In this document: positions 5,061-53,907 of the stretch, in pieces
Position numbering within the stretch: position 1 is the first letter of the stretch
Layout of the letters: each line of letters begins with the position of its first letter
Source of the DNA: Setoptus koraiensis
Taxonomy: Eukaryota > Animalia > Arthropoda
Reading direction: 5' to 3'
Length of the DNA: 64,000 nucleotides
Assembly (NCBI GenBank): GCA_048013815.1
Contig: CM106585.1
Span: 11,718,001 to 11,782,000 of the forward strand
Program-made: the position numbers and the translations under genes
The notes under the pieces: model-generated
What the model was told of the DNA's origin: nothing
The model's input: only the letters and a program-made list of their open reading frames with translations
Database searches by the model: none

Positions 5061-5942
5061 TCACTCACGGCCACCGAACATTTCACCACGGTATACATCA
5101 TATGAAAAGTTTCTGTTGATGTTGCTGGTCACTTTAGCCGACATAATTGAATTGTTCATGTCAGTTGAAGAATCAATCAGGCTCTTTCTGAGAATGTTTC
5201 GACTACTACTACTATTACTAGGTGTTGACGAATTGTTGATTTGAGATGGGTTGGTTGAGGATGTCGGTGAGTTTGATGATGATAATGATGATGTTGGTGT
5301 GCTCATTCTATTCAAACAATTATTTAGTTGATTTTGATCCACCATCTTACTAGACCTCAAACGAAGCCTTTCGTTCTCATAGATTTCATCGTCATCACTT
5401 GATTCTGGTGTCAGTCTGCCTTGAATTGTTGAGGTCTCTTGGATTTCCTTAGCTATCTTGGCCGCTAGTCTTTTTCTGTTTCTAGATTTGGTAGTCTTAT
5501 TAGAATTGTCCGGCAATGGTATGGTATAGTTTCTCGACATGGTTTTGTCATTGAACGCTGTGGTAACATTATGAATTTTTTCATTATACTTGAACATTTC
5601 ATCTGCACTCCAACCATTGGCATCATCTGTATCCATGAGTTCCCTATACAGGCTCTCGTCTCCAATTTTGTATCCCTCATCTTGCCATGTTTCCAGCTGT
5701 CGAAACTTAATAGATCCGTTATTATTTTTGTTATTAACATTATCATCAATTGTGTCATCGTCGCAGTTATTTTGTTGTGGTTGCTGTTGTGGTTGCTGTT
5801 GAAGTTGTGATTGTTGTTGCTCCTGCTGTTGTTGAATTTGTTGTTGTTGCCTTTGCATTGAGGCGGCTGCGGCGGCAAACAAGGCTGCCAGGGCATTGCC
5901 TCCGGTTGCTGGCCTCACGGTAGCTGACGATGGGGCGGCCAT
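5061..5942 (-). CDS. Atx2: Ataxin-2-like protein with polyQ and LsmAD domain only, 293 aa (last codons may be replaced by splicing at the GTGAGT donor, 5068)
   Basis: FRQLETWQD...DDANGWSADEMFKYNEKIHNVTTAF...YTIPL matches the ataxin-2 LsmAD signature (RELxPW...NGWDxxEMFxxNE..GVxSTF...YT). N-terminal poly-A/poly-Q tract present. Confidence 0.7.
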   Translation of the reverse strand: MAAPSSATVRPATGGNALAALFAAAAASMQRQQQQIQQQQEQQQSQLQQQPQQQPQQNNCDDDTIDDNVNNKNNNGSIKFRQLETWQDEGYKIGDESLYRELMDTDDANGWSADEMFKYNEKIHNVTTAFNDKTMSRNYTIPLPDNSNKTTKSRNRKRLAAKIAKEIQETSTIQGRLTPESSDDDEIYENERLRLRSSKMVDQNQLNNCLNRMSTPTSSLSSSNSPTSSTNPSQINNSSTPSNSSSSRNILRKSLIDSSTDMNNSIMSAKVTSNINRNFSYDVYRGEMFGGRE

Positions 5943-8426: not shown

Positions 8427-11400
8427 TTAATATTCAAGAATGTCAGACAGGATCTTTTTCATGTTGTCCACTTCTTTCAAAACACTCTGACGCTCTATTT
8501 TCATGGCCTCCATTTCCGGTGCCATTGATCTGATGTATCTCTTGTAGGTTTCAGTTGTAGTAATGGTAGTTGAAGTCGTGGCCTTCGGCGATCTCGGGCC
8601 ACTACTATTGTCATTGTTGTCCAGCGTGCCATCTACTATTGTTGTGACCTCTAAAATAGAATTTTGCTTTGCATTATTTTGACTGTTTGGGTCTGCTGGA
8701 GAAATAACCCCGTTGATATCATTGTTGAGTAATGAAGTTGTGGCGGTGTTATTGTTAACTTGACTTTCAAGTCTGTCGCGCGATTGTCGCAATTGTTCCA
8801 CTTCTAGCTGGCATTGATTATGAAGCAATGTCATTTGTTTAATTTGTTGATTAAGTTGAGCTGTTAATTGTTTTTCTCTGGCCAGCTCTTCAAACAATTG
8901 CTTACGTTGCTTTTCGACATTCACAGTGTAGTCTTTTAATTTTTTAACATACTGACTATTGGCAATGATTTCTGGCGCTTTTCTCGGTTCGTTTATCATT
9001 GTTTGGTCCAAATTAATTGTTCCGTCTAGGAGTCTATTCATGTTGATTGGATTATTATCGTTAACCATATCCAGCGTGTTTGCAATGTCCTGAATGCAAG
9101 TATCTATACATTTGCCCAGCGACTCTTTGAGGATTTCGTTGTCTCTTTCGAGATCTCCCTGTTTCTTCAATGAATTGTCCACTTTCATCTGCAACAAGCT
9201 CTTTTCGTGTTTCTCCTCATCCAGGGTCTTGGCCAGATTTATCTTGGCCTCATTCAGTTGTTGTTTCAATTGTTCCAGAACTTGATCGCGACTTTGGCCA
9301 CTGGCACCGTTTGCCTTCGTGTCATCGGTGTCTCTATCACGACGGTTATAACGCGACGATTGTCCGCTACATTCGGCATCCGCTTGTTTATTGGCGCTGG
9401 ACTGTTGCTGATGTTTGAGTTTCGTCTGAAGTCGATTTAAGTCCTTCTGTTGCTCGGCCACAATTTTCTCCAAGCGAGCTATCTCAATGCTGGCACCGTG
9501 AACCAAATCTCTGGCAAGACTCGGCTGGCAGCTAAAATCTCTGAATTTACTCAGCTCTTGCTCTCTAGTTTGGTTGCCTCTGGCGCTACTACAACTGAGA
9601 AACTGGTCAGTTTGGGCCAGACGTTTGCCCGCCAACTCGAGCTGCTTTTCCGCTTTGTTCACCTTGATTGTTGCCAGTGATCTACTGAGCACCTGAGGTT
9701 TTGTTTTATTTGCATCGTTGGGCACTGTCACTTTAGCCGGGCTTGAAACAGCCGACGACGACGACGTCAACCTGTTTCCGTTGGAATCTTGCTCACTCCT
9801 CGCCGCCTTGTCTTGTTGCTCGCCATTGGCCTGTTGAGCCAGTTTTGTTTTCCTCGCCGGCACAGACGGTCTGGGGTGCTTCACCATGGCCTCGCCAAAT
9901 ATTGGAATCCATTGCAATTTATCACTAGGTTTCACTGGAGTGTGCTCTTGTCTGCTGTGGTCGTGCAGCTCCGGGGTGCCATGTTGGTTGGCTTGCCGGC
10001 TCAAATCGCTGCTGCTGCCCCTGAGACTACTCCTCGAATTGGAAAGATGCGACAGTGTGAGCTCGGACTTTGAGCGTTGCATCAAATTTGTGAGGCCTGT
10101 TGGCTGTTTGGGCCCAACAGCCGATTGAGCTTGAGGTTGGAACTTTCTCAGCTGACCAAAAGAGGCCAGATTTTGCTGACTAGAGCTTATTCGGCGCCTA
10201 TAATTTGGCTGCTGTTTGGTGGTTGGTGGCGTTATATTGCTGTTCACTTGTGATGCAACATGCTGATATCCGGTGAGAGCTTTGACGTCTCTGGCCAGAT
10301 TTGGATCCAATCGAGAGCTGTATGTTCTGGTGTTGTTGGCGGCTCGATTGCCTCCCACCAGGGGCCCATAATTCCATTGTTGTTTGTAGATTTGTGCCAA
10401 TTTGCGCTGTTGTTCCAATTTTTGCTCGCTCTTTCTCAGATCTACTATGCTCTGTTGGAGATCGTCAATGGTCTGCTCGAGTTGAACGCGTCTATTTCCC
10501 AGGGCCCTGTTGGCCGATCTGTGGGCCAGCGGCACAGTGGGGTCGTTGTTGTCGCTGACGACACTCGCTGGCTTGATGCGGCCAATGTCCAATTTGGCAA
10601 TTGTTTGCTCGGATTGGTGTTGCTGCTGGTGAGTGTTGTCAGAATAGTGGCGCCGTTGCTGCGAATTATTATTATTATTACTATGATTATTGGCGGAATA
10701 TTGGTGCTGAGATTGGCCAGGCACCGGAAGAAGATAGTCGTTGCGACTGCAGCAACCATCGCAAACCGAGCTCTTCCTGTCGCACAAACAATTCGGACAG
10801 TCGGCGCGACCCGTCAGCGGTCTCACCCGGGCCTCCTGTTGATTATCTGCGGTTTGTGCGCTGTCGGGCGGATGTGTTTGGCGGATATAGTTGCCGAAAA
10901 TATCCATCTGTGAGGCGATGCTTGCGGACGTAACGGGGACCGCTGTTTCGTTGCTGCTGCCCGGCTGGCTAACTCGTTGTGGTTGGACTGAGCGAGTGCT
11001 GAGGCCCGGCGAGTGGAACAGTGGCCCAGTGACAAGCGGTTGCGGCTGATGCACCGATTTGTGGCTCGACAGGCCCAAGTCTGCGGCAACTGTTGCGTAA
11101 GACTGTTGCGTTGATGTGGTTGTTGCGGGCGCCGGCAGTGGCGACGACAATGGCGACGCTGATGACGAAGTTGTGACAAATTTCACCTTGTTTCGTTTGA
11201 ATTTGGCCAGTTTGGCATTGATCAATTTTAGCTGTTTCTTGATGTGACTATTCTCTTGTTTCAAGCTTAGGTTGTCCTGCTCCAGGGACAGAGATTTCCG
11301 TTGCAACTGCAAATCGGGCCATTGCGATTCGCCGCTGTGCACCAGACCGGTTGTAGTCGGATAATTCAGTGATAATGGCTGCTGCTGTTGCGTCATTTGT

Positions 11401-11612
11401 TGAAAAAATATTGGCTGCTGCTGCTGCTGTTGAGGGGGCGCCAAAATGGGCGCCTCGACAATTTGTTGCGCAGCCATCCTGTTGGCACCTGTCCTGTTGG
11501 CTAGTGATGCTGGCTGGGGGGGCTCCGCGACCGGATGATTGTGGCTCATGTAATCTCTGGCCTGTCCGTCGTACATGAAGGCCCTGGTGGCGGCGTGGGC
11601 CGATTTGCGCAT
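8427..11612 (-). CDS. Uncharacterised low-complexity/coiled-coil protein, intronless, 1061 aa
   Basis: 3.2-kb ORF with several heptad-rich helices (e.g. LQLQRKSLSLEQDNLSLKQEN, LEQLKQQLNEAKINLAKTLDEEK) separated by Q/S/N-rich linkers. No family recognised. Confidence 0.8.
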   Translation of the reverse strand: MRKSAHAATRAFMYDGQARDYMSHNHPVAEPPQPASLANRTGANRMAAQQIVEAPILAPPQQQQQQPIFFQQMTQQQQPLSLNYPTTTGLVHSGESQWPDLQLQRKSLSLEQDNLSLKQENSHIKKQLKLINAKLAKFKRNKVKFVTTSSSASPLSSPLPAPATTTSTQQSYATVAADLGLSSHKSVHQPQPLVTGPLFHSPGLSTRSVQPQRVSQPGSSNETAVPVTSASIASQMDIFGNYIRQTHPPDSAQTADNQQEARVRPLTGRADCPNCLCDRKSSVCDGCCSRNDYLLPVPGQSQHQYSANNHSNNNNNSQQRRHYSDNTHQQQHQSEQTIAKLDIGRIKPASVVSDNNDPTVPLAHRSANRALGNRRVQLEQTIDDLQQSIVDLRKSEQKLEQQRKLAQIYKQQWNYGPLVGGNRAANNTRTYSSRLDPNLARDVKALTGYQHVASQVNSNITPPTTKQQPNYRRRISSSQQNLASFGQLRKFQPQAQSAVGPKQPTGLTNLMQRSKSELTLSHLSNSRSSLRGSSSDLSRQANQHGTPELHDHSRQEHTPVKPSDKLQWIPIFGEAMVKHPRPSVPARKTKLAQQANGEQQDKAARSEQDSNGNRLTSSSSAVSSPAKVTVPNDANKTKPQVLSRSLATIKVNKAEKQLELAGKRLAQTDQFLSCSSARGNQTREQELSKFRDFSCQPSLARDLVHGASIEIARLEKIVAEQQKDLNRLQTKLKHQQQSSANKQADAECSGQSSRYNRRDRDTDDTKANGASGQSRDQVLEQLKQQLNEAKINLAKTLDEEKHEKSLLQMKVDNSLKKQGDLERDNEILKESLGKCIDTCIQDIANTLDMVNDNNPINMNRLLDGTINLDQTMINEPRKAPEIIANSQYVKKLKDYTVNVEKQRKQLFEELAREKQLTAQLNQQIKQMTLLHNQCQLEVEQLRQSRDRLESQVNNNTATTSLLNNDINGVISPADPNSQNNAKQNSILEVTTIVDGTLDNNDNSSGPRSPKATTSTTITTTETYKRYIRSMAPEMEAMKIERQSVLKEVDNMKKILSDILEY

Positions 11613-16867: not shown

Positions 16868-19800
16868 AATATATATAAATGTTATAGTTGTTATAGTTGT
16901 GAGGCGACGGCTCGAACGAAGGGATTACGTCATCCATCAGCTAACACGCAGCTAACACACTCATCATCCATCACGTGTAATCGATCATCTAGACTGGCGA
17001 TGTTGCAGCGATGCTGCGGCGATGCAACTGCGATGCAATGCAATTTGGGCGCCGGACTGTCCGATTGGCAGCGGCCCGAACCGGTCGGCCATGGAACGGG
17101 CGTTTGTAACGAGCCGCTCAAAAGTAGCCACTCGCATAATACTTTTGAGCGCTCTTTTGAGACACCTTTGGGGCCCGTCGTGCGTCCCATTCCGACAGTG
17201 TGTGCCTCCAAGTCCGACACTGTGTGCCTCCAAGTCCGACACTGTGTGCGTCCTATTCTGACAGTGCGTGAGTGTGTGTATAAGCGGCTGGCAAGACAGT
17301 TTGTTGCAGATAGACGAGTTGTTGTCCGTCTTGCGTACGTTGCATGCTGAGGAAGCGCCGACTGCGCCACCATTAGACCCAGTGGGCCCGTCAGGCAGTG
17401 CGCTCTTATTGGGGCCGATTCGCCTCAGTGGCCAGCCGGGCGACCAGTCATCCAGATCGCGCCAACGGGCCCACTGGTTTGTTAGATTACAGGATCGTAA
17501 CAGGTTGCGTGACACACACACACACGAGTGTGTGTACGGCCGGTGGGCCCGACGACGAGCCATTGAACGGCGAGCCAGCAGGCACAACACGACACAACAA
17601 AACATTGCATAACATTACATAACTTTGCATTACGTTGCACACATAACTCACCTTTCTCTACCCTTTCACTACCCTCTGACCCGACCTGCCCGACCCCGCG
17701 TTCAATCCGCACAATCAACTTATCCGCACAATCAACTTATCCGCACAATCAACTTATCCGCCTCTTACACGCCTCTCGCAACTTGTCGCCACATCGGCGC
17801 TGCCCGGCAACCAATTGGACTGAACTCTTTGGCGCTTTTCGTGCCCGCTCCATGAATCGTGTTCGGGCGCATCCGGCGGCCTCGTGCCAACCGAACGCGC
17901 AAACGAATGGCGCAAATTGGCAATATTGGCGAAATTTGGAAAATTTGGAAAATTCGAAACTGGGAAATTCGAAACTGGGAAATTCGAAACTGGGAAATTC
18001 GCAAATTCGAAATTGGGAACTCCGAAAATTCGAAAATTCGAAAAACGGGAAATTGGAAAATTGGAACAACATTTGGTCGACATTGGGCGGACATTTGCAT
18101 ATCGTGCCGAACTGGTTACGTAACATGCATATAACGGTACACGTCACATGGCACACGCAGAGCCAGATTTGTGATAGTAGTCGCCTCATAAACTTGCTCT
18201 ACACTTCCATCAGCTACTTCACTTCCGTTTCCGCCACTTCCGCCTACAGAAAAGCAGCAGCAGCAGCAGCCGCGGCAGAGAGGCCACATAACTTAAATAA
18301 CTGCGGCGCTCGACAGCAAGCTGCTGCTGCGGCGGCCGGCGCTAGCAGCGATCCAGCGACAAGTGTCATCAGGCGCCCAATGGCGGTTTGTTTGGCCGGT
18401 TACGCCGGGTCGCCGCTGAACGGATTGATAGCGGCAGCGACGGCGAGCTTGGCGCCAAAAAGCAGCAGCGCCAGGCCGAAGGCCACCACCGATTGTAAGG
18501 CCGTCAATAGGCTGATGCAGGAGGTGCAAGTGGATTGCGGCCAGTTGGGTGCGGACGCCGACGAGCGCCGGACCTCGCTCGATGTGACCGACGATTTGTG
18601 TCACAACAGCAGCGACGACCATTTGTCGCTGGCGGCCGACGCCGCCATCACCAACCTGGACAACAGCAACGGCAACGACGACGACAACAACAACGGCGGC
18701 AGCGGCCCCTTCAAGGTGTGCGACGTGGACGTGCGCTGGCAGCCGGGCCGGCCGGGCGCCAGCAGCCGCTGCAGGGCAACAGCGAGCGAGCTGCAGTTAA
18801 TTGATTGCGCGCCGCTGCCGGGCCCCCGGGCCGGCTACGGCGCAAGCTGCGGCTACGGTGGCGGCAGCGGCGGCGGGTACGCCGGGCCGGGCGCCGCCAG
18901 CAACTGGCAGCCGCGCGGGTCCGGCCCGCAGCAGCACGGCAGCGTCGGCCCGACCGACAGGTTCGGTAGCGTCAGTTTAACGCGACGTCGCAGCGAGATG
19001 AGCGCCTGTGTTCAGTGCAGCCTCAAGTGCGGCCTGGGCGCGCATTTCATGACGGACGCCATGGGCGGCTTGGCGGCGCGACCGGCCGGGCACCACCATC
19101 ACCCGCACACGCTGGAGGGCGGCGCGGACATTCTCGAGGACCACAAGCACCAGCATGCGCTCTTCGACCACCTGTCGGGCACGGGCATAATGATGGACGA
19201 GGCGGCCGGCCTGTCGAAGTGTTTCGCCTACGAGCAGTGTCAGCAGCAGCAGCAGCGGCAGCAGCCCAGAGAAATTAGACTGGATTATGCGGCTCATCAG
19301 GCCCACCGGGCCGTCGGCAGCGTCAACGGGACGATGGCGCAACGCGAGCACGCGCACTCGAGCAGCTCGTCGTCGTTGCATCATCACGACATGAACGACG
19401 ACGAATCGTCGTTTGCGGCACAGCAACAGCAGCAGCAGCGACTCGCCAGCCAATGTGGCGACAACCAGCAACAGCAGCACACCAACCAGTACACGAATTA
19501 CGTAAGCATGCCATTCAACAGCAACAGCGGCGCCAACAACAACAACTACGGCAGCGGCGCCGCCGCCAACAACAACTACGGCAGCAGGGCGCAACTGATT
19601 CAACAGCAACAGCAGCAGCAGCACGGGCCGGACAGCGGTCAGTGCGGCGCGGCCGGGCGCCGCGACAGCAACAGCAGCCAGAGCGGCGCCCAGAGCCGGC
19701 GCAACAGCAGCCACTGCAACGGAAGCAGCAGCAGCGCCATGGACAGCGGCCTGGCGCTCAACTCGACGGCCACTAACAGCAGCGGTCAGTCACTGTCGCT

Positions 19801-22800
19801 GGCCATGTCGGCGCATAGCGCCTTTCGCGCCTCCACCGGCCAGGCAGCGTTGCACCAGCAGCCGGCGGCGGCGCCGCCGCATCAACAGCCGGCTCATCAA
19901 CAGTCGACGGTGCCGCATCAGCAGCCGCCGTGGTGCAGCAATGACGCAATGCAGTCGCAACAAACAAACAACAGCAACAACAACAACAACAACAGTGTCG
20001 TCAATATGACAGCGGACAGCTGTGCGAATGGCTGCATGACAGGTGATTATGCAGCGACATTGCATAATAACAATCAGCAGCAGCAACAGCAGCACCATTT
20101 GCTCACGTACCGACGGCCCTCGTGTCCCTCCACCAGCCAGTACCATCCGCATCACCCCGTGCATTCCTGCGGCCTGATCGACCATCACCACTTGCACCAC
20201 CACATCGACAACAATTATCATAATTACGCGCTGTCGGGCGCCTCATTCCAGCAGCAGCGCCAGCCGTACAACAACTACTGCTACGACCACCATCACCTGA
20301 CCATGTCGTCATGCCAACCCGCGCCCCAGCCCGACCAAGCGCAGCCCGACCAAGCGCAGCCCGCCGACCAGCCGCAGCTGGACCGGCCCGACGGCGACAG
20401 GCAGCGGGCGGCCGCAAGCGCCAAACAACAGCCAGCGACAACGACGGCGCCAAGGCCGGGACCCACCGATTACGAGTACCCGGGGTGCTACGAGTCGGGC
20501 GACGACGACCTCGGCCTCGATCTCACCAGTCTCACCGGCCAGCCGAGCAACACCAACGACAGCGTGCTGTCGCTGCAGCACGAGCAGCACTACATGACCG
20601 CCGCCGGCGGCGGCAGCACCGGCGAGCTGACGGGCGCCGGCGCGCAATCGTGCCACGTCGACATGTCGCCCGAGCCGCACCATGCAGCGACATTAATGAA
20701 TGACATAATCGGCGATTGCGTCATGCCCGAATCGCCCGACAGCCGGCCCGCGCTGCTGGCCACAGGTGAGCGCGACAACACCCCGGCGAGTGCCTTGATG
20801 CCGCCCGACGGGGGCTGTGCCTTGAACTCGGGCGCCGCTGCCATGTCAGGCACCGCAATGTCGGGCGGCGCGCAAAAGCAGCCGCAAGTGCCCGCCGCCG
20901 CCGCCCCTCAAGACACTGTGATCAATGTGAATGGCGCCCCGACGGACGGCATGCCCGCCGCCGCAGACTGTGCGCCGAAACACGCGGCCCGAATGCCGCT
21001 CAGCTACTCGCAAAGTCTGGCCGCGGTGCTGCGCAACCCGACCCATTGCGACGACGGGCCCCACAAACTGAGAAAGTACTCGCTGCCCACAATGGCTACC
21101 GGAAGCAGACACACAAAGCAGCGCCACAGCAGCAGGTACTCGCTGGACGTGGCCGCCAGTTGCAAGCAGCCGGCACAGGAGCTGCACCACTGCAAGTACC
21201 AGCCCACCGGAGCGGTCGCCCTCAATCGGGCCGGCTACATGGGTTCGGCCACACGAGTGACCTGTTGCATGAGCTGCGGCCCGGACGATGCGGCCCGCGA
21301 CCCGCTGGCCGGTGTCGGGCCGCCGGGCACCAAGGTAAGCGCCAGGATCATCACAACTCGCAATCCGCTCACCCGATCCCACTGAGTCAGCCAATCTCAA
21401 TTAACCCGACTAACTAACCCAATGCCCAACTTGTCTCACCCGCTGCAGACCGACTGGAGCCGCGCGGACCCGCACACCAAGTGGCCACTGGCCACTGGCC
21501 TGCTGGCCGGTGGCGGCAAGCACACGCCTCTTACCGCCGCTGACGAACGGCCCGACGTCGACGACTGGCCGCCGGGCACCGCGCCCGCCAGCGCCAAGCA
21601 AATGATGATGCGGCGGCGCAACTCGCACGGGATTGTGCGCCAGAGCTCGTTTTGGATGGACGACAGCCAGTGCAGCGAAACAAGCGACTGCGTGCTGCTG
21701 TACGCAAACAACGCGACAACAACAGCAGCGCCACCAACCGCACCGACAACCACAACGGACAACGACAACGACGACGACGGCATATCGTTCAACCAGGACG
21801 ACGAGCGCGACTCTGACGGCGCCGATCCGCTCGATGGGCCGCTAGCCGGCCCGCAGTCGCCGAGCGCCGTAGCGGAGCCGCGACCGTCCGCGCGAAGTTA
21901 CTCGGGCGACACCGCGCTGCTGTGCGGCCGGCTGAGCGACGAGGGCGCCGCACAACAGCGGCCTGACCCAACCATGCTGCACGTGATGAGAATGCGCTCA
22001 AAGTCCAACTCTGTCAACCCGCACGAGAGATCGCTGGCCATCAGCGCCATATACAATTGCGCAACCCGGTCCGCGTCGGCCGCCTCGGGCTCCCTGAATC
22101 GTCGCACTTCGTCGCCGTTCGGCCGGTACCCCGGCGCTGGACCAACAAGTTACGCCGGGCCGCCAAGCGGCAGGCCGCTCAGTGGCAACAGCAGCAGTAG
22201 CAGCAACAACGACTTCGACGGCGCCAGTCTGAGGAGGCGCCTCGCCGGACACGCGGCAGCGGAAATGAAGGCCGCGCAAGCGGCCGATTGGATCGCCGGC
22301 AGCCATCAATTGCAAAAGTCCGGCGAGTGCCCGGTGTCGGGCGGCGATGCGGCGCTCAACCGATCGAGCGCACTGAGCAGCATCAGTTGTGTCAGCGTGG
22401 GCGCCGGCGACCGGGGCGCCGCAACCAGCAGCGGCAGCAGCGCAAGCAGCAGCACAAACAGCAGCAGCAACAACAGTCGGGCCGGATCGAGGATCGGGTC
22501 CGCTTCTCAGCAGCAGCAGCAGCAGTACCAGCAGCGCCGCAACAGCAGACTGGTGCGCCAGGACTATGACAGATTTGAGCGAGAGTTTCAGCGTTCGGCC
22601 GCAGCGGCCAGCGCCAACTGGAAGGGTAGTCGTGGGGCACTTCCGGCGAGCCAACATTTCGCACAGGATGGGGCAGCGGTGGAGTCGGCGGGCGAGCCGG
22701 CGGCCGTGCCGAGCGGTGGCTGGACAAACGAGCAACAGCGGGCCGGCTGTGACGACAGCGGGCCGGCGGGTTGTTGTCGTCACAGGCAGCAGCACTTTGT

Positions 22801-24423
22801 GCACAACAGCACCACATCGGGCGAGAGTTACGCCGACCGGCTGGCCGGCGACCTGTCGGGTACGTCGGGTCGCACGGGTCGCAGCAGCGCCGACGTGGCG
22901 CTGGCCGCCTCGCTAAGATCAGCGCTAAGCCGGCACCAGGGCGCCGCCACCGACGGGGCCGCATCGGCGGGCCCCAATCAGCGGTTCTCCATAAGCTCGA
23001 GCTCGACGGAACTAAATCACGCAAGCTCCATGGGGGGCGCCATACACAAGTCACAGCAACAAATGAGACGGCGCAAGAGGCGCGCCCGCCGGCAGCGCCA
23101 ACTGGCCGACGGCAAGGGCAGCCAGGAGGCCCGGCAGACCGCGTCGTGCTCGCACAAGCCGCATTTGCCCGACGACGCCGACGACGACGACGACCAGGAG
23201 CAGCTGATACGGAGCGGCGCAAACTCGGTGTTCGGCTCGATATCGAGCCGGCCGGGCAGCCGGCTCGACAGCGACGCGCACGAGTCCGAGCTCGAGGTCA
23301 GGGGTGGGTATTGGCAATTGCGTCACGATCATCGATTGATATCTCTGTTGAAATTCGCGATCTGTTCATCTCACTAATTGTACTCTCTAATCGCCCCTCC
23401 CTCCCCCCCATTGAAATGTCAACGATGCGCAGAAATGAGGGCCGAGCGACCCATCGCCGACATGAACTCCGCCAGTCTGTAAGTAGCCCGACAGTTGCGA
23501 CCATAATAACCGACCAATTTTGAAACACTAATACTAATACATCCGTATCCGTTCGCCCATACCCGCACCGCGTCAACACGCCCAACAGGGAGCGCCAGTG
23601 CCGCGAGCTTTGGAAGCTGCGCGCCGCCCTCTACGAGGACGCCCCCGTCGACACCTGGTCCAACTATCACCAGCGCCTGTCGAGGCGCTACGATTCCGGC
23701 TACAAGTCCCTAGAAACGCCTGTTACCCAGAACAATTCCCTCGACGGGCCGTTCGTGTCCGGGGCCATCGGGCAGCAACAGGCGGCCGCGGCGGCCAACT
23801 TCAGTGCCAACCAACTGGCCAACAATGGCCGCGTGCCAACAACACCGCCGGCCAGTGTTGGCGGCGTCCCGTGCCCGGCCGGCACACCGCCGGCCACCCC
23901 CTCCGCACAGCAGCCAATGACAACGAGATCATCGTCGGAGCTGACCGGCTCAGGCTGTCACCAGTACCAACAGCAACAATCGCTAGTTAGGCACATACAG
24001 CAAAGCAGTCAGCGGCGATACAGTTTCTGCTACCGGCGCCAGCAGCGGGCCGGCGCCCACAATCCGTCCTCTGTCGTGAGTGGTGCTGCCAGCAACGATT
24101 TGCAAGCGCAGTATCGTCGCCACACTGCGGCCCTTGACTGGCAACCGTCGTTTGGCCGGACATTCAATTCATCGCAACAACATTCCAGTTCAGTGGGGTC
24201 AGCAAGCGGCCCGTACGAGCCGTCCGCGTCGAGCCTCACCGGCCCGTTAGGCGCGGCCAGCGTGTCGGACGGCGATTCGACGGGCCGGCAAGCGCGCCCG
24301 CAACAACAACAGCAAGCTCAATTGCACCCGCACCAACAGACCAGTGCCAATGCCGCTGCAAATGGTTACGCAAGTGAACAACGTCCACCGCACGCAAACG
24401 ATGAGCCAGCCAACGATGAATGA
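15659..24423 (+). CDS. CBARP/BARP-like (voltage-gated Ca2+ channel beta-subunit-associated regulatory protein-like) single-pass membrane protein, 6 exons, about 2053 aa
   Basis: Predicted exons 15659-15967, 16653-16684, 18250-21334, 21449-23303, 23433-23478 and 23589-24423. All GT-AG, phases 0/2/0/1/2 match, total 6162 nt (divisible by 3). Short T/P-rich N-terminus with an NQS sequon, TM helix VALIGIVLGCALAILTLLIVIY, juxtamembrane CRYC, and cytoplasmic motifs CRELWKLRAALYE and RYDSGYKSLE. These resemble recalled human CBARP YRDLWSLRASLEL and QMDSGYASIE. Confidence 0.72.
16269..16311. repeat. Perfect 19-bp stem hairpin with 5-nt loop (TGATGTAACTGTCGCTCGT-tagcc-ACGAGCGACAGTTACATCA) in intron 1 of the CBARP-like gene
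   Basis: Arms are exact reverse complements. Confidence 0.95.
17705..17761. repeat. 17-bp tandem repeat, 3.3 copies (ATCCGCACAATCAACTT)
   Basis: Read directly. Confidence 0.95.
17931..18066. repeat. Degenerate GGAAATTCGAAACTG / GGAAAATT tandem array
   Basis: Near-exact 15-bp units around 17946-18000 with degenerate flanking copies. Confidence 0.85.
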
Positions 24424-27400: not shown

Positions 27401-29949
27401 CTGGTCCGGCCAGCCAGACGGGCCGGCCGTGCGGACGAGCGGACGGGGCCACGATTGAGCAAGCTGCAGGGAGCTCATTAGATCGCGCACAGTGGCATAG
27501 CTAGTTGCACACACAACAATTGCGCAATCTGGCCAGCCAGCCAACAAGCCAGCCAACAAGGCGGCCAACAAGGCGGCCACCAAGGCCGCCGACGGGCGCA
27601 CAAGAGAATGGGCCGAACGGGCTCAATGGCGGGCAAGCGGGCGGTGTCAATGGCAGGCAATTTAGTTTGGCCCGACGGCTGATCGTATCGCGACACACAC
27701 ACGCTGACCACTAAGCCCGTGTGTCGCGATCATGTTTTGTTGTTGGCCGCCGTTCAACGGGCCACTGGAGCAAGCGCTCACAACCGACCGTTGGCAGCGC
27801 CAGCACTGACGGATCGCCGAATCAATGGACCTTGGGCCGCCGCCGAATCCGCTGGCGCCCCTCGGCCGCCATTCGGCCGCCATTTGGTTATCGGGTTGCT
27901 GGGCCACTCGGCCATTCGGTTATCGGGCTGCCGGGCCACTGGGCCATTAGGCCGTTTGGCCGTTTGGCCATTTGGCCATTTGACCATTTGGCCATTTGGC
28001 AAGCTGATAGCCGCGCCACTCCGGCGTGATGGGCTAGATGGCGCGCACATAGCGGCGCTAGGCGCCTAGCGCGTTCGCGGACTGGCCAGCGACGTGTCGT
28101 GAATTCGCACACACACACACACACACACACGCACAACACGCCGCCGCTCGCCGACACCAAGACACACCCACACGCACGGTGCGTCGGCGAGGCCGCCGAC
28201 GGGCAACTGCTCAGCTGCCCGGCGAGCGGCGCTGCCCAGATGCCCGCCAGACAGTACGTGTGTGTGTGTGTGTGTGTGTGTGCTGGCGTTGCGCAATTGC
28301 AGCCAGCAGTCTGTCCCGTCTGGCTGGCTGGGTGTTGCTTCGCACAAAACTTTTTTCCCCATTACCTAGCCTGCTGCTGCCGCGGCCGCCGCTGCTGTTC
28401 GGGCCCGTCGGGCTGCCAAATCGGGTCTGCCGCGGCGGCCGCCGCCGCCTGCTGCACATTACGCTAACGCAGCGGCGGCGGCGGCGGGGGGGGGCGCAAA
28501 AATCAGCGGGTGCGAGTTGTCGGCAGGATCGTTTGGCTGGCGTCGGCAGCGTCGCTGATGCTGCTGGCCCCCATCTCACTTTGCCATTATGTCACTGCTC
28601 GCCTATCAATTTGTTTCTTTACGTAGCCCGTTCGCTGCTGTGCGGCGGCCTTCCCACACGCATTCTTGTGTGTGCGTGTGTGTGTGTGTGTGTGCGCGCG
28701 ATGCCCATCAAGACTCCCGCAAGGTGCTTGTGTAGACGCTGCATCAGCAGACGGCGCGCGCTGCTGGCCTGGCAAAAACAGCGGCTCGCCGCCGACAGCG
28801 AGCGGCCCCACGATCAGGCTGGCAGCGCCAGCTATTTTTGTGCCAGCTATTTTTGCCGTCGCTGCACTGGCGGCCCGCTGCACGGGGGCCAATCTGTGCC
28901 GTTTGCGGCGAGCCTGTCCCGGCGGAGGGGCCCCAGCGGCGCTGCGCCCGACGGTGTGGCGGACAGCACGGCGCGATGCGATTGGTCGGTCCGCCAGCGA
29001 GCGTGTGGGGCTCGCCTTGTGTGCAGTGCGCCCCTCCTCCATTGTGTGTGTGTGTGTGTTTGCGCACACACATCGGGAACACACCTAGCGCCCCCCCCCT
29101 CGCCGCCGCCTGATACGCTGCTTAACATGCAGCCGTACAGCCATGTGCTGCATGTATCGGTCAGGTGCTTGTGTACACAGATGACTCAAGAGCACATGAG
29201 GCCAGTAAAGTTTACTTCGTTTGCTCATGGCGCATCACTCGCGCACTGGATGAGGGGGGTGGGGGCACGCAAACACACACGCACACACACGTTGCAACTG
29301 GCCGAACGGGGCTCGTGGGCCAGCGGGTTGTGTGTGTGCGGGTGCTTGTGTAAACTACTCTATCTAATTTATCTGCTCTCTGTGCTGGGCCGCCGCTGCG
29401 TAAAGCGCTGCGGCATTCGCCCTGCACACACACACACACACACACACACAATTAGTATAGCGAACTATACAGCGACTAGCACACAGTGTGCATAGTTCGG
29501 GGCAAAAATGGGGCCCGAACGCACACACACACAAGCACATGGTGCGCGGGGCGCACGCTCACAGGCGCACAAGCTGACTGACAATCAACACAGAGGACGA
29601 ATCAATTGGCAGAGGCGTAGCGGCAGCGCGCAAAGTCGGGGGGCTCGCACAGGGATGAGAATCATCTTTATTTAACATCTCGGCATCGACGACGACGACG
29701 ACGACGACGACGACATAATCATCCGCTACAGCACGCTGAGCCATCACATACTGTAGTATATGTGTGTGTGTGTGTGTGCTATACCATATAACAAGTATGC
29801 AACAAATGTACACATGCACCCCATGCTCTGCCAATGTGCGCTGGGGCTGGCGGCCAAAATAGAACTGTACACTATGAGGCCGCTCGAGCTGCTTGCGCTG
29901 CTGGGGCCAGATTGCCGCTTTGCACACTCTAGTCTGTGTGGTTGTGTGC

Positions 29950-42144: not shown

Positions 42145-44437
42145 CTTGTCCTGTTGTTACTGACCGCACAAACAAACACGCATACACATGAATACGAAAA
42201 GCACAAACAGAAAGTAAATAGTATATCTATATATAATCAATAATAATAATAATAGTATCAACAAACAAAAATTATCTTCCAATGAGAGGTTCACTTTTGT
42301 TCACACTTTTGTTCACACTTGTTGTCTTGGTCGCGGTTAAAGTTGCTGTTGCTGCTGCTGTTGTTGCTGTTGATGTTGTTGTTGCTGTTGATGTTGTTGT
42401 GGCGGTGGTGGTGACTGGTGGTGTTTGGGTCCCATATTCATAATGATATTTATAATGATTTGCATGATTTATTGTTCAATTTCACTTGTAGAGCTTCCGC
42501 TAGCCGCGCACAGCCACGACCTATCACATATATCCTGTGTGTTAATCAGACTGTATAATAATGATGCAACTGCATGATGCAATGATGTCATCGAGTTGAC
42601 CAGTGGCCAAGAATGAGCACTCATTCAATGGGTATGCAACTAACACTTGAGGCTGGCAAGTTACAGTTATGTTTGCCTAGCTATCACACAAACACACAGA
42701 CACACATGGCGGACTTGATTGCAGCGACTTATCAATTATTAATATTCTTCTTCTTTTCCTGTCTGCGAACACCACCACCACCACCGCCGCCACCACTAAG
42801 GAAGAAGCGCAAACGAATGGAAATAGCAACGCCCTTAAACTTGACCTCTCTCTCTCTCTCTCTCTCGCTCCCTCTATGTCTGTCTATCTGTTCGGTTGGT
42901 TTTGTTAGCGCACGATTACGGCGACTGACTCGAGACGACCGTGGTCGCCGTCTCGCTAATAGTAAACGTTGATATGCTGCTGTTAATGCAAAAACGAGAT
43001 ACCAACGCCTCTCTCACTCTAATAATAGCTCATTTGCTTCCTTAGTTGTCGAGCAGTCGAGGGGGAAGCAAGCTAATTGTTGGCTAGATGTGATTAAGCT
43101 AGGTGAATTGTGTTTGTTGCTATCTTCTCTCTGTCTGTCTCTCGTTGGCTCGCTCACTGTTGTATCCTGAGCTACACCGTTCACGCCGCCGGTATGTCTA
43201 GCCAGCCAGTCGGTGTAGAACAAGACAAAAAATATTTCTCCAGTTGTTGTTGTTGTTGTTGTTGTTGTTGTTGCTGTGAAAACTTTGTTCATAGCCCCAA
43301 CGACGCAACAAGCCTGATTAGAATGACGAGATACATAGGCAGTTTTGTCTGTCGATAAATGAACATGATCTATGATGTGCAATCGCCACCAATCAGGTAA
43401 AACAACAATGAGCTTAAATTGTTGTTACGACAATGTATTCAGCCAAGTGTGTCACCCCGACAATGAGAATGACAAAAGACCCAACTACGACATTCTTCGA
43501 CGCGCTGCTAGCGGGTGCTAATAATTATTAAATCATTTGAATTAGATGAACAAATGTGTCTTTGCAGCACACCTAATAATAACTAGATGATAAATGAATA
43601 AACACATCACCGCAGCCATCCAATCAAGCATGTCTGGCACCACCGTCACCACTACCATTACTGCTACTACCACCACTACAACCACCACTGGCACTACCAC
43701 TACCACTGGCACTACCACTGGCACTACCACTGATCACAACAAAACCCTTGTTATACTAGAAACACAATTTACACCTCAAATCATATAACAATTACGTTAA
43801 TAGAGAATTCTCAAGAATTCTGCTGGCGCATTCCGCAACGAGAAAGAAAAAGATAAAATTGTATTATCATCAAAGTTGACTTGTTGCTGCTGCTGTTGCC
43901 TCCGCTTGTTGCAACCTTGATAAAGAATTATTCTTTGTGCAAACTCAAACACTAGAATGTTGGAATGAAAAAACACAGTTAAGCCTGACAGAGACGCTGC
44001 TGCTGATGACCGCGAACGTATAAGTCATGAGTTCTGAGACGTTCTTTTTATCTGCTTCTTTTTCTTCGTCTTCTTCTTCTTCTGAGAACAAGTTGCATTC
44101 ATCAACGCAAACAAGTTGAACGAACTATCACTGGGCAGTAACACACATCAACACAGTTTAGTTTTCAATGTTGCTCTCTAGCCATATTAATAGCAACAAC
44201 AACAACAACTTGTTCAATTATTATTAACTGTTATTCTCGATGCTATTCAAGAGTGCTATTCAAGAGGAAGGGTTGCACTGATGCCCTTGTAGTACATTTT
44301 CTGCACATTAAAGATAATGAAAGATTCTAATATTCAAAAGTAAGTTGACCTTTAATTTAGATCAACAACTTGTATTCACCTTGATTAACTTCATGGTCAG
44401 TTGTAGAAAATATGTTGATTGACCCTTTAGGTATTTA

Positions 44438-45522
44438 TTATGATGTTTTATAATCCTCATCATCCTCGTCATGTCCATTGAAGACTCTTTCATCCCTATA
44501 AATGATATCGTGATAAAACAAATCCGGCAGTTTCAGTGATCTAGCTTTCTCTACAAGTTCAGGCACTAATATAGGATTTACTAATTCAACTTCATCGTAA
44601 CTTACAGATGACTCTTCTTCAGCTGACTGATCTAACATTTTCTTCATGGCTGTTTCAAAAGCATCGATCATAGCCGGCTTCATTCGAACCAGAAAAACTT
44701 CAGGTGTGGGCTCATTACTGTCGCTGTAGTCGAACGAACTGAATTGCAATGTATTTTCTCTCGGTTTTTCCAAGCCCTTCAAAGTGTTAATAGGAGAATT
44801 CAAACATACTAAATTGGTAAGCTCTCTTCTCATTAATAAACGACTGAACTTGGTTTTTGAGTTGTGGAGAAGTTTCAAGACTCCTACGCCACGTTCTTTG
44901 TATTCTTTGTCGCGCATACGATAAATTTTAGCTCGATTCTCAAATATAACATCCTCGTCTTCTTCGCCAGTCTTCACGTCGATGACAGGGGGCAACGGTT
45001 TTGACGGGTCAGATACAATAGGCACATCGTCTCCAGCTTGCTCACCAGTTTCCGCATCTTCTGAATTTTCGGCCTCTTTTGTAAACGAGAAGTTCGAGGA
45101 CGAAAAAACTGGCTCGAATTTGCCAGAAAAACTGAATTGGCTTTCTCCCTGTGACCATTGAGGTTGAACTTGATTCTTGGCAAGTGAGCTCGAAAAGAGA
45201 TTAGTCTGAGGCACTACTGGAGGTAGGCTTGCGGAGTTAGATGAAAAACCAGAGAAAAGGTTTGTTGATGGAGGTAGAGCTGAGAATAGGGGTGGTGGTA
45301 CAAATGAAAATAAAGATGAAGCGATAGATGGAGTTGTTGTTGGAGTTGTTGCCGGAGCTGGTGTTGGAGTTGTTGCCGGAGCTGGTGTTGGAGTTGTCGC
45401 CAGAGCTGGTGTTAGAGCTGTTGCTGGAACTGGTGTTTGAGCTGTTGTTAGAGCTGTTGTTAGAGCTGGTGTTAGAGCTGGTGTTAGAGCTGGTGTGAGA
45501 GCTGGTGTGAGAGCTGGTGCTA

Positions 45523-45555
<33 letters not shown>

Positions 45556-46255
45556 TTGGAGCTGGTGTTGGAGCTGTTGCTAGAGTTGCAGTTGGAGTTG
45601 CAGTGAAGATGGGATTAGTTGGAGTCAGAGAAAAAGGTTTGAATAGGGGCTGAGCTGGTTCCTGAGTCACGGGCATGGATTGAACTGGTGCCTCCACCTT
45701 GTTTTGGCTAATCTGCCCCATTTTGGTAGCGAGATCTTCTATCTTTTCATCCATTTTATCAATTTTGATGTTAACCTGGTTGATACATTTTATCAGTTCT
45801 TTAAGTTGATCACTCACTGAAGACTCGTTGCCTAATTTTTTCGGCGTTGCCTCTACTGTAGTATGTTTTTGAGCGTTGTAAGGGCACGTGCTCAAAAAAG
45901 CTTTAAGATTCTGTACAATGGGGTTGGAGGGATGCGCCCTGATAGCCAAGTTGAGCCATTTTCTATAATCTACATCCTCTAAATGCACTTCGCTCATCAT
46001 GAGTATACGGCAAATCTCAAGAAGAATTCCGCTTCTGTCGGGATTGAGCTGGTAACATTGCTCGTACATAGTGAAAGCCTTCAGATAATTTTTCAAATTT
46101 TCATATATTTGAGCTAAAAGCATCAGAGCCGATATGTCATCCGGCTTGTTGGCGAGATATTCCAGAATGCATTTCTCCGCCATCTTGAATTCCTTGTTCT
46201 GAAAATAAAGTTTGCCTGTGATAAAACCTCTAGATTTCTTATCTGGCGTTGCCAT
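44438..46255 (-). CDS. Nup358: Miniature RanBP2/Nup358-like protein (TPR + one Ran-binding domain + IR SUMO-E3-like motif), intronless, 605 aa
   Basis: N-terminal TPRs (KSRGFITGKLYF..ALMLLAQIYE..YEQCYQLNP), RanBD (VKTGEEDEDVIFENRAKIYR...KERGVGVLKLL...RLLMRRE) and C-terminal VELV..KARSLKLPDLFY..DDEDYKT resembling the RanBP2 IR1-M region. ATG at 46255; AATAAA overlaps the stop. Confidence 0.85.
45335..45600. repeat. Coding 12-bp-based tandem repeat (AGAGCTGGTGTT variants) encoding the (TPAL)/(PA) linker of Nup358
   Basis: Read directly in DNA and in the translation TPALTPALTPAL. Confidence 0.9.
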
Positions 46256-46704
46256 TATGATGGTCGGTTGAAGTGGTAACAATAACAATTTGAAAATACT
46301 ATAAATGATACTAATTGTGATGATAATCCGGCTCTACCGCGTCGATTGTATAAAACCGTTGATGAGACGCGTTCGGAAAAATCTTACCTCAGTGGGTGTA
46401 AGAGTTGAGCATGGGAGAATCAGCCACACGCAGCATTCAATCTCACCTGATGTGAGAGAGCATGTCTGCCCGGTCTTTTTTTGTCGTTTGAAAAGGGCGC
46501 CATTTGATTTGAGCGTAAAAATCTCACCATGCAACTAGTCTTCAATAGCGACTTCTCGATAATGATTGCATAGCGGCATAAACGGCTTTAGAATCTCTAC
46601 AATTAATATAAAGTTGTTAATTTTACTCCATAAACACGTCTCATATTGAACTGACCATCTAAAATCAATACTCACATCATTGAATCGGACAAAATTGTGA
46701 TATC

Positions 46705-49390: not shown

Positions 49391-50443
49391 TTAAAGTTTG
49401 ACCACATTGCCTGTGATTCGGCTAAGAATGGCGGGTATTTTATCGTCTGAAAGTGACTTGCTCCATTTTGACTCTAAAAGTTCCTCAGCTAATTTGTTGA
49501 CATTTTCTTCGTGCAGTTTCACGGGGTCAAAATACGCCATCAAAACAACTAGATGTTGACTCAATATTTTCACATCTGGATCAATTTGCATCAAGGCCAA
49601 AGCAGCATCGCCTGACATTGATTCTATATTATCAACCAGAATGGACGGAAATGTCTGGTCGACTAGAGCAGAGTACATTGACTCGTTAAATTGCTTGTAT
49701 CCTTTCATGGAACCGTCTATGATGGCAAAATCTAAGTCTGTGCCAGCATTACCTAGGCCATTTAACGTGTTGACAATTTCTCGTCCAAGACAATAGGCAG
49801 TATCAGTGAATTTTGTGCACTTCGTGTCTCTACTTTTGCCCAACAGCAATAGTACGGCAACTTCTTTCGACATGGAATCGACAGCCGACGTTATAATTGC
49901 TTTGTCTTTTCGAGACATGCCCTCTATATGTTGTAGCTTCTTTTCTATGACCTCACTATAGTCCAATTTCTGATTATTCTTGTCTGGCTTGGAAGCACTT
50001 AAAATGTGATAAAAAAGAAAGCAGGATAACAAACCTAGGACTGAGCAAATTGTGAGCAGCTTGACAGGATTGCCCAACGAAGCATCTCGACGTTCTGGTA
50101 ATGATCTGACTGACTCATTCAAACTACGATCCGTTGTTTGACTATCCTCGGGAAAAAAATCTAATAAATCAAAAAAAATCCATAAATATGATTCATAATA
50201 GTATAAATCGGCCAGTTTGATTATGTTGTGACACTTGGTTAGTTTGTCAATTTCGCTTTTGTAATCATGCAATCCCTCTTTATTTTCTAATTCGCACTTC
50301 TTGGCAATGGCCAACGTGCCTGTTTCACGGTTCCTCACCTGACAAATGGTGATTGTTGGGCCATGGGGCAATGCTGTCACGATTTCCCATGATGACATTG
50401 GATCGATGTCAAATTTGATATTATGATGATATCTCAGGCCCAT
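49391..50443 (-). CDS. Chimeric protein: degenerate Slik kinase N-lobe + TM helix + LAP1/LULL1 (TOR1AIP/Torip)-type luminal torsin-activator domain, 350 aa
   Basis: Residues 3-89 align with the N-terminus of the adjacent Slik ORF (about 43 of 89 identical by hand). TM helix LLTICSVLGLLSCFLFYHIL. Then VAVLLLLG, AYCLGREI, AIIDGS, ILVDNIES and terminal DDKIPAILSRITGNVVKL, like recalled LAP1 PAVLLL, RCLSEQI, IRIDG, VVHRFES and DPDKLNGLWSRISHLVLPV. Confidence 0.75.
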   Translation of the reverse strand: MGLRYHHNIKFDIDPMSSWEIVTALPHGPTITICQVRNRETGTLAIAKKCELENKEGLHDYKSEIDKLTKCHNIIKLADLYYYESYLWIFFDLLDFFPEDSQTTDRSLNESVRSLPERRDASLGNPVKLLTICSVLGLLSCFLFYHILSASKPDKNNQKLDYSEVIEKKLQHIEGMSRKDKAIITSAVDSMSKEVAVLLLLGKSRDTKCTKFTDTAYCLGREIVNTLNGLGNAGTDLDFAIIDGSMKGYKQFNESMYSALVDQTFPSILVDNIESMSGDAALALMQIDPDVKILSQHLVVLMAYFDPVKLHEENVNKLAEELLESKWSKSLSDDKIPAILSRITGNVVKL

Positions 50444-51147
50444 TTTGAACGTTTGGTGAGTCTTCTCAACAATGGGAGAAATGTTTGTGCTGAAACAAAA
50501 ATTTCTAAGCTGGTAAGTTGGTTGATATAAATCATCATGTTTTAAACAATATATCGGCTGGACAGGTCCGGCTTATTCTTGCGATCTGGTACCACACGCC
50601 AGGACAGCTGAGGGGTTGAATAACATAAACACATGAGTACAGCCTGCTGATAAAACACAGTCACAAAGAGCTGGTGCAACATGCGCAAGATCCCGGCCAA
50701 AGTCGAGTGGAGTGCGAGAACACTCCGTTCACATCGGAACGACGCCTCTTTTTATGCTCTCTCAGCAACTTCTCCCGAAAAACATCATTCACTAGATAAT
50801 CTTTTGAACCGTGATAATGCTAAATCTCGACCAGCAAGAACTCCGTTAGTTAAGCCTGAATGTTCCAAGTTTTATGTATACATAGAATATTCAGATAGTG
50901 TAGATTAATGATGGTCATGGCCGCGCCAATAACTCTACGACTCAGAAATTGGGCAGGCGATTTCAGTTCTGTCATTTTGTTACAATTAGTATCATGGAAA
51001 TACATACAGCAAGTGTGATTTTTTTAAGGAACTGTTAATACCAGATATGACAAGTCATCGAGTGCGACTATGAACTACATGCTTCCCTAGTAGCCGGTCA
51101 ACAGGCAGTAGTCTAATGTTAGCTTCAATATTATACATATAACTTTA

Positions 51148-53907
<2,760 letters not shown>

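Follow-up and report, generated by a model that had tools for sequence, protein, structure and literature searches.

A mite gene in which a remnant of the Slik kinase N-lobe precedes a putative Torsin-activating domain

Torsin activators, Slik kinases and a gene that resembles both

Vertebrates have two Torsin activators, LAP1 and LULL1, which differ mainly in their N-terminal domains. The human proteins, LAP1 (TOR1AIP1) and LULL1 (TOR1AIP2), cross the membrane once in type II orientation and carry a C-terminal, AAA+-like luminal domain without a P-loop, the last helix of which is closed by a Ser-Arg pair. The roles of the Torsin ATPases are poorly understood, and so is the way in which those parts of the activators that face the cytosol or nucleoplasm steer them. 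The arginine R563 of LAP1 (R449 of LULL1), strictly conserved where helix α5 ends, is an arginine finger, and its mutation lowers the stimulation of the Torsin ATPase; in LAP1, a disulfide between C424 and C582 tethers the C-terminus to helix α1 (PMC4358337). The fly Torsin cofactor is Torip (PMC8408595), also named dLAP1. The gene described here belongs to the mite Setoptus koraiensis and lies in a stretch of 64,000 nucleotides (nt), hereafter the window (GenBank assembly GCA_048013815.1, contig CM106585.1, positions 11,718,001 to 11,782,000). Its product begins with a segment that resembles the N-lobe of the SLK/STK10/Slik kinases and continues into a transmembrane (TM) helix and a domain that resembles the luminal domain of LAP1, LULL1 and Torip.

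The open reading frame (ORF) of this chimera occupies window positions 49391..50443 on the minus strand and encodes 350 amino acids (aa) plus a stop codon in one unbroken frame that is shared by both halves. Upstream on the same strand lies an intact Slik/SLK-type kinase gene of 901 aa (51148..53853, minus strand) with Pkinase and PKK domains, and 704 bp separate its stop codon (51148-51150) from the ATG of the chimera (50443). Among proteins with a name, this kinase is closest to the SLK/STK10/Slik kinases of mites and other arthropods, above all to that of the eriophyoid mite Fragariocoptes setiger (84% over the kinase domain). Nearly every gene of the window consists of one long ORF, with only a short spacer to the next, and in a sequenced eriophyoid genome 84% of the genes are intronless (PMC7738191), so that a single-exon gene is the norm. 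On re-checking, what a first, sequence-only reading of this DNA had stated about the sequence of the chimera was borne out throughout; its further claims are taken up below with the results that bear on them.

Origin of the N-terminal segment

The first 95 residues (50159..50443, minus strand) correspond to the N-terminal extension, strands β1–β5 and helix αC of the kinase. In a BLASTP comparison, aa 4-95 of the chimera align with aa 23-116 of Slik with 43/94 identities (46%; E 1e-24), close to the identity of about 48% that the sequence-only reading had given for a diverged Slik N-terminus of some 90 residues. The best sequence matches in the PDB are human SLK and STK10 (E 5e-15), and a single-sequence phmmer search of the PDB with the chimera returns kinases only. 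The same residues align with SLK, STK10 (LOK) and Drosophila Slik, but the chimera has neither the part that leads from the hinge into the C-lobe, with its HRD and DFG motifs, nor the PKK coiled-coil region of these proteins.

The similarity does not begin at the ATG of the chimera. At the DNA level, the 13 in-frame codons upstream of it (50444..50482, minus strand) are collinear with the start of the Slik coding sequence and homologous to its first 13 codons; about 15 such codons had been proposed. An explanation is offered by L001, a Logan contig of another species from a separate sequencing run (SRR33593474), in which the same copy lies about 0.7 kb downstream of Slik, as it does in the window. 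The L001 copy follows Slik collinearly from the very first residue and still begins at its own ATG, equivalent to the start codon of Slik (MSTLVEKTHKLFKMDNSSTKHRKYHH vs Slik). The window copy is shorter by six codons, lost in frame, and its ancestral start codon has become ATT (50480-50482), so that translation must begin at the following ATG, which is conserved together with its AAAATGG context. The duplicated piece therefore began with the Slik start codon or slightly upstream of it, and it ended near strand β5, at the latest in helix αD: beyond aa 95 a stretch collinear with αD (DRSLNESVRSLPE) can be traced, and its similarity is not significant (shuffle p ~0.1). The breakpoint of the fusion falls in the linker that follows (aa 96-126; 50066..50158, minus strand). 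Taken together, these observations support the view that the N-terminal ~95 aa arose when the 5' end of Slik was duplicated locally, and the origin of the fusion by tandem duplication plus deletion, as first proposed, is plausible.

The window contains a second complete protein-kinase ORF (395 aa, 307-1494, plus strand), which is unrelated. Its identity to Slik is only about 25%, and it is excluded as the source of the N-lobe copy.

Coding constraint on the copy and its relative in L001

The copy and Slik share 63% of their nucleotides overall, and their identity at the three codon positions (0.64/0.75/0.51) has the pattern of coding sequence. When 5000 neutral simulations were run at this nucleotide identity, only 1.3% remained stop-free, and the mean aa identity was 34%, against the 47% observed. 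The signal is clearest over aa 36-95, where the values are 0.65/0.77/0.42 and the observed aa identity was reached by 0/5000 simulations.

The comparison with L001 leads to the same view. The Slik proteins of the two species are 98.6% identical (91% at the DNA level; dS 0.51), and their ratio of nonsynonymous to synonymous substitution rates (dN/dS) of 0.013 indicates strong purifying selection. Over 63 codons, the two N-lobe copies give dN 0.23, dS 0.89 and dN/dS 0.26 (Fisher p 1.4e-4); this is far from the value near 1 that would have spoken against the coding constraint claimed by the sequence-only reading. The only indel between the two copies measures 18 nt and keeps the frame, whereas the flanking spacer is rich in indels. 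By these comparisons, the copy has evolved as protein-coding sequence under moderate purifying selection, although its protein changes 20-30 times faster than the parent Slik.

The L001 contig also bears on whether the fusion could be an artefact of assembly, that is, a mis-join of a Slik-like fragment before an unrelated Torip gene. In favour of an artefact, no second copy of the junction is on record: exact look-ups of the chimera, of its SSRP1 neighbour and of a mitochondrial-S17-like neighbour, which were to find the junction of a relative, returned nothing, a metagenome scan with peptide patterns from the chimera revealed none, and the L001 contig ends at about codon 50 of the copy. The question of whether relatives share the fusion thus has a divided answer, with the N-lobe copy present in the same place in L001 and the junction seen in the window alone. 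Nevertheless, a separate run from a separate species reproduces the order of Slik, 0.7-kb spacer and N-lobe copy; a copy that is 63% identical to Slik DNA cannot be a collapsed repeat; and the two halves are in frame and stop-free over 350 codons. A mis-join is for these reasons regarded as very improbable.

Loss of kinase features

By its sequence, the copy is no kinase and is incapable of phosphorylation: the C-lobe is missing, the Gly-loop has been lost and the β3 lysine is replaced in the relative. The Gly-loop (GxGxxG), GELGDG in Slik, reads LPHGPT in the window copy and LTHGPA in that of L001, and the homology stops at about aa 95, in strand β5, with no HRD or DFG part; the sequence-only reading was correct in calling the former destroyed and the C-lobe absent. 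Pfam Pkinase scores 13.4 bits on the chimera (cut-off 31.7 bits), covering profile positions 9-81 of 263.

The same reading had drawn attention to the β3 lysine and the αC glutamate. Both are indeed kept in the window (K47 in AIAK, E64 in SEID), but the lysine carries no meaning: the L001 ortholog has isoleucine there (AIGIK), so that the position is not under constraint, and the glutamate region lies beyond the coverage of L001. A residual nucleotide binding, which the two kept residues might imply, was rejected on the strength of the isoleucine. The suggestion that the fusion links partners of the Slik/moesin type to Torsin also finds no support. The substrate recognition of kinases resides in the C-lobe, which is precisely the part that is missing.

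The luminal domain

The C-terminal part of the chimera (aa 149-350; 49394..49999, minus strand) is an AAA+-like activator domain of the LAP1/LULL1/Torip type that lacks a P-loop. Word-indexed homolog searches with the whole chimera and with aa 1-125 gave no matches. An exhaustive HMMER search with aa 100-350 recovered 38 family representatives (best E 2.7e-13), and the same query directly matches, by phmmer, three proteins that themselves pass the LAP1_C profile (P0027, P0032 and P0034; for P0027 the match has E 1.6e-5, and its own Pfam LAP1_C match 6e-13). Pfam LAP1_C matches 17 of the 39 family members, and the query is among those it misses: no match to PF05609 was obtained even at E 1. Because of this, family membership is based on intermediate sequences, on profile-profile comparison and on fold. 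The family profile reaches LAP1 (4TVS) in the PDB at E 7.6e-25 and LULL1 (5J1S) at E 2.9e-20, and hhalign joins the profile of the mite clade to that of the canonical members with a probability of 99.45% (E 5e-22); by itself, the mite-clade profile finds LAP1 in the PDB with an E-value no better than 0.017. The match to LAP1_C expected by the sequence-only reading failed, then, for the single sequence in Pfam and held for hhalign and for the family profile against 4TVS.

Structure prediction agrees with this assignment. A single-sequence AlphaFold model of the full-length chimera was unusable (predicted local distance difference test score, pLDDT, 38.8), but with the family alignment aa 100-350 were modelled at a pLDDT of 85.9. 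Foldseek placed LAP1 4TVS and LULL1 5J1S at ranks 1-3 for this model (E 4e-8 to 2e-7, TM-scores 0.59-0.67), followed by the AAA+ domains of ClpB, Skd3 and ClpC. The identity to human LAP1/LULL1 in the structural alignment is only about 14%, and the query falls short of the Pfam LAP1_C threshold. On these grounds the view of the luminal half as a LAP1/LULL1-type activator is upheld.

The candidate arginine finger is R342 (49418..49420, minus strand), which lies where the last long helix, modelled as 336-343, comes to its end. It is aligned to LAP1 R563 and LULL1 R449 and is invariant in three family alignments (A2, A6 and A7); the segment ILSRITGNVV, in which the finger motif had first been recognised, aligns with LWSRISHLV of LAP1/LULL1. 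No Walker A motif ([AG]xxxxGK[ST]) is found in the chimera, and the Walker B position reads ILVDN instead of hhhhDE.

The cysteines follow a pattern of their own. C209 and C218 (49790..49819, minus strand) form a pair that is invariant in the mite clade; C218 is aligned to LAP1 C424, and C209 lies nine residues upstream. The canonical group keeps the C-terminal cysteine, but in the chimera the equivalent of LAP1 C582 is absent, and a disulfide of the C424-C582 type is impossible in the mite clade because its proteins end just after the finger motif. In place of the C-terminal tether, the mite Torip clade has a local CxxxxxxxxC pair between strand β1 and helix α1. The sequence at this pair, LLLLGKSRD, resembles a truncated P-loop remnant.

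Within the family, the chimera groups with Drosophila Torip (dLAP1) and the Torip-like proteins of mites (P0001-P0023, P0028 and P0031; support 99/96). These proteins have about 290-440 aa, the same layout of TM helix plus luminal domain and the same 13 invariant residues, all of which are kept in the chimera, including S341-R342 and the cysteine pair. Their N-termini are mostly acidic and of low complexity, unlike the kinase N-lobe of the chimera; human LAP1 and LULL1 also have N-terminal regions of their own.

The luminal domain is the most divergent of its clade. Its median identity to the clade relatives is 25%, while these share 48% among themselves, and it sits on a terminal branch of 1.9 substitutions per site, which could be due either to a deep lineage or to a faster rate of evolution. 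This gives room to the proposal that the fusion is real but concerns a redundant, fast-diverging extra Torip, with a canonical Torip elsewhere in the genome that would activate Torsin. The proposal also gains from the position of Torip in other mites, where it adjoins a Brix-domain gene and not Slik, and from the rapid change of the N-lobe relative to Slik. The residues that are invariant in the clade are nonetheless all kept, and the fold is predicted with confidence. The branch is comparable to that of P0005, the next-deepest member (1.32), and together with the basal position of the chimera it agrees with a species lineage of deep origin, which the Slik tree suggests too. No second Torip-like sequence occurs in the 64-kb window, and no other Torip of this basal lineage was found among 1.84 billion representatives. 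A redundant paralog is, on balance, unlikely.

Topology, junction and reading frame

A single hydrophobic helix (aa 127-148; 50000..50065, minus strand), with a mean Kyte-Doolittle value of 2.07 over 19 residues, precedes the luminal domain, and the AlphaFold model places a helix at aa 126-149, matching it. This arrangement, with one TM helix ahead of the luminal domain as in LAP1 and LULL1, suggests a type II anchor, the orientation being that expected by analogy. The methionines of the chimera stand at positions 1 and 16 and then at 176 and later, which leaves the stretch from the N-lobe to the TM helix without one; any membrane-anchored product that starts in the ORF therefore contains the N-lobe.

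The notion that the N-lobe is part of the protein has to be weighed against the possibility of splicing. The reading frame contains a hypothetical in-frame GT-AG interval of 192 nt (CAG|GTGAGG ... TTTTTTTCCCGAG|GAT; 50147..50338, minus strand), the excision of which would delete aa 36-99, both sites being in phase 0. It could accordingly be proposed that the gene is a normal Torip and that the kinase-like stretch stays outside the main protein, whether spliced out, bypassed from an upstream exon or present as a leader only. The strong donor-like site at 50338 and the T-rich, acceptor-like ...CCCGAG at 50147 favour this, as do the GTGAAG that L001 has at the donor-like position, the median intron length of 170 bp in Aculops, which is near that of the interval, and the preferential retention of 5' introns in eriophyoids (PMC7738191).

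The T-rich run has another explanation, for it is a codon-for-codon remnant of strand β5 of Slik (WMLIEF vs WIFFDLL), in which TGG ATG CTC ATC GAG TTT became TGG ATT TTT TTT GAT TTA. The resemblance to a 3' splice site noticed by the sequence-only reading holds, therefore, for the acceptor-like CCCGAG, while the T-run is a descendant of β5. Moreover, the would-be intron holds aa 36-95, the clearest coding signature of the whole copy, which no neutral simulation matched, and this makes its constitutive removal unlikely. The lack of a methionine before the TM helix and the scarcity of introns in eriophyoid genes point in the same direction. A normal Torip with an untranslated or discarded kinase stretch is consequently given a small probability, and a kinase-free alternative isoform is possible.

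Distribution and age of the fusion

A kinase-like N-terminus was sought in the 38 family representatives and found in none of them (0/38). In three more distant eriophyoid-type genomes, including that of Fragariocoptes, nothing kinase-like or Torip-like lies within 5-10 kb downstream of Slik. The fusion is thus restricted to the lineage that comprises the window species and L001, in line with the original description of the gene as new. In the phylogeny of the N-lobe, the window and L001 copies group together (100/99), but their stem is too long for the duplication to be placed in the mite Slik tree; for this reason its dating is based on synteny.

Proposed role of the chimera

The chimera is probably a functional, membrane-anchored Torsin activator that acts through R342 in the manner of LAP1 and LULL1, and a remnant of the Slik N-lobe, non-catalytic and under moderate constraint, would have taken the place of its N-terminus. 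In this proposal it would be a lineage-specific gene of an eriophyoid-type mite, presumably expressed as a single transcript, and its product a type II protein of the endoplasmic reticulum or nuclear-envelope membrane. By comparison with the human complexes, the nucleotide-free, AAA+-like luminal domain (aa ~150-350) would dock beside the Torsin ATPase, and R342 would enter the Torsin active site and trigger the hydrolysis of ATP. The acidic, disordered cytosolic or nucleoplasmic N-terminus that is usual in the family would have given way to some ~95-118 codons from the beginning of a partial tandem copy of Slik, with Slik's own start codon as their first, and the N-lobe would be translated as part of the protein. 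It would most likely serve not in kinase signalling but as a replacement cytosolic domain, one that provides a start codon, possibly a promoter, and an N-terminal domain before the membrane anchor.

Several of the findings described above weigh against this proposal: the luminal domain escapes Pfam and its clade profile hardly reaches LAP1 unaided; its long branch could be that of a diverging paralog; a donor-like and a pyrimidine-rich acceptor-like site bound an in-frame interval within the N-lobe; and the junction of N-lobe and TM helix is known from this assembly alone. To these must be added the low pLDDT of the N-lobe in the single-sequence model (~50-60), an isolated kinase N-lobe being a structure that may not fold stably.

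N-terminal captures in other mite Torips

The window fusion becomes more credible in the light of parallel captures at the N-termini of other mite Torips. In the Torip homolog P0003 (L012:1432-2742; the Nup54 case also involves L012:4078-5241), the first ~190 aa are a copy, 56% identical, of the N-terminal half of the nucleoporin Nup54 (E 5e-78; dN/dS 0.21). The Nup54-derived piece begins at the start codon of its parent, and its fusion point lies about 25 residues N-terminal to the TM helix; the parent gene is located two genes away from Torip, and the syntenic Torip of a related species (P0002; L007 and L008) has no such fragment. It is, judging by these comparisons, an independent N-terminal capture. 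Torsin itself has been implicated in nuclear-pore biogenesis.

Two further proteins have recognisable domains N-terminal to the TM helix: an F-box in P0023 (aa 17-55; 33.6 bits, cut-off 20.5) and a PRP4/SFM motif in P0017 (aa 19-46; 35.7 bits, cut-off 25). A parent Prp4 gene was sought upstream of P0017 (L013:4816-5679), and none was found within 4.8 kb. Evidently, the cytosolic end of this family is readily replaced. A subclade of the Torip homologs, with P0011, P0014, P0018 (twice), P0021 and P0031, has in common an N-terminal module, 'EP.Y..V.KIW..F.R.GL', that is without annotation or Pfam match.

Chimeric new genes such as Sdic and jingwei of Drosophila offer a precedent. In them a locally copied 5' part becomes the new 5' end of a neighbour, and the new piece first evolves fast and is later constrained. 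The window gene differs from them in its recipient, a Torsin cofactor in a streamlined, intron-poor genome, and in belonging to a family with further independent captures (the Nup54 fragment, the F-box and the PRP4 motif). It would represent a clean and datable birth of a new gene by partial tandem duplication and fusion in a highly streamlined animal genome, and a case of a kinase N-lobe kept under selection without its C-lobe.

A more far-reaching proposal is that the N-terminus of the Torsin activator is a plug-in targeting module, repeatedly exchanged in eriophyoids by copying the 5' parts of nearby genes, and that the half-kinase has a specific new binding role, such as docking partners from the Slik pathway or chaperones. 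This proposal is tentative and rather doubtful, but if it were true, the luminal activity of Torsin would be coupled to a new cytoplasmic site or signal. The mites can be viewed as natural domain swaps, in which one luminal activator is combined with a dead half-kinase, a nucleoporin fragment, an F-box or a PRP4 motif, and which allow two questions to be put to the test: what properties of the N-terminus are important, and whether the activation of Torsin can be redirected. The interest of the locus would rise if the recurrent captures prove to retarget the activity of Torsin.

Intergenic elements and other features of the window

Two elements of the spacer concern the relationship between Slik and the chimera. 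An AATAAA overlaps the Slik stop codon (51144..51149, minus strand), within a 32-nt stretch that is identical in L001. About 150 bp upstream of the chimera ATG lies a 26-nt block (CCCCTCAGCTGTCCTGGCGTGTGGTA; 50590..50615, minus strand) that contains an E-box-like CAGCTG, is unique in the window and is identical in L001, while the spacer around it has diverged and is rich in indels; it is a candidate promoter element. These two elements suggest that Slik and the chimera form separate transcription units. A metagenome scan with the 26-mer found no match, and a scan for bacterial promoters and terminators was set aside as irrelevant to a eukaryote.

Among the other ORFs of the window, those at 8427-11612 (minus strand), 17783-21385, 21422-23377 and 28179-29495 (plus strand) and 5061-5942 (minus strand) have no Pfam match at E 1e-5; they encode 293-1200 aa. 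An ORF at 44438-46288 (minus strand) combines TPR and RanBP1 domains with a long Thr/Pro/Ala repeat region (TPALTPAL...), and beside it, at 43000-43800, lie simple repeats that encode poly-Thr and poly-Val on both strands.

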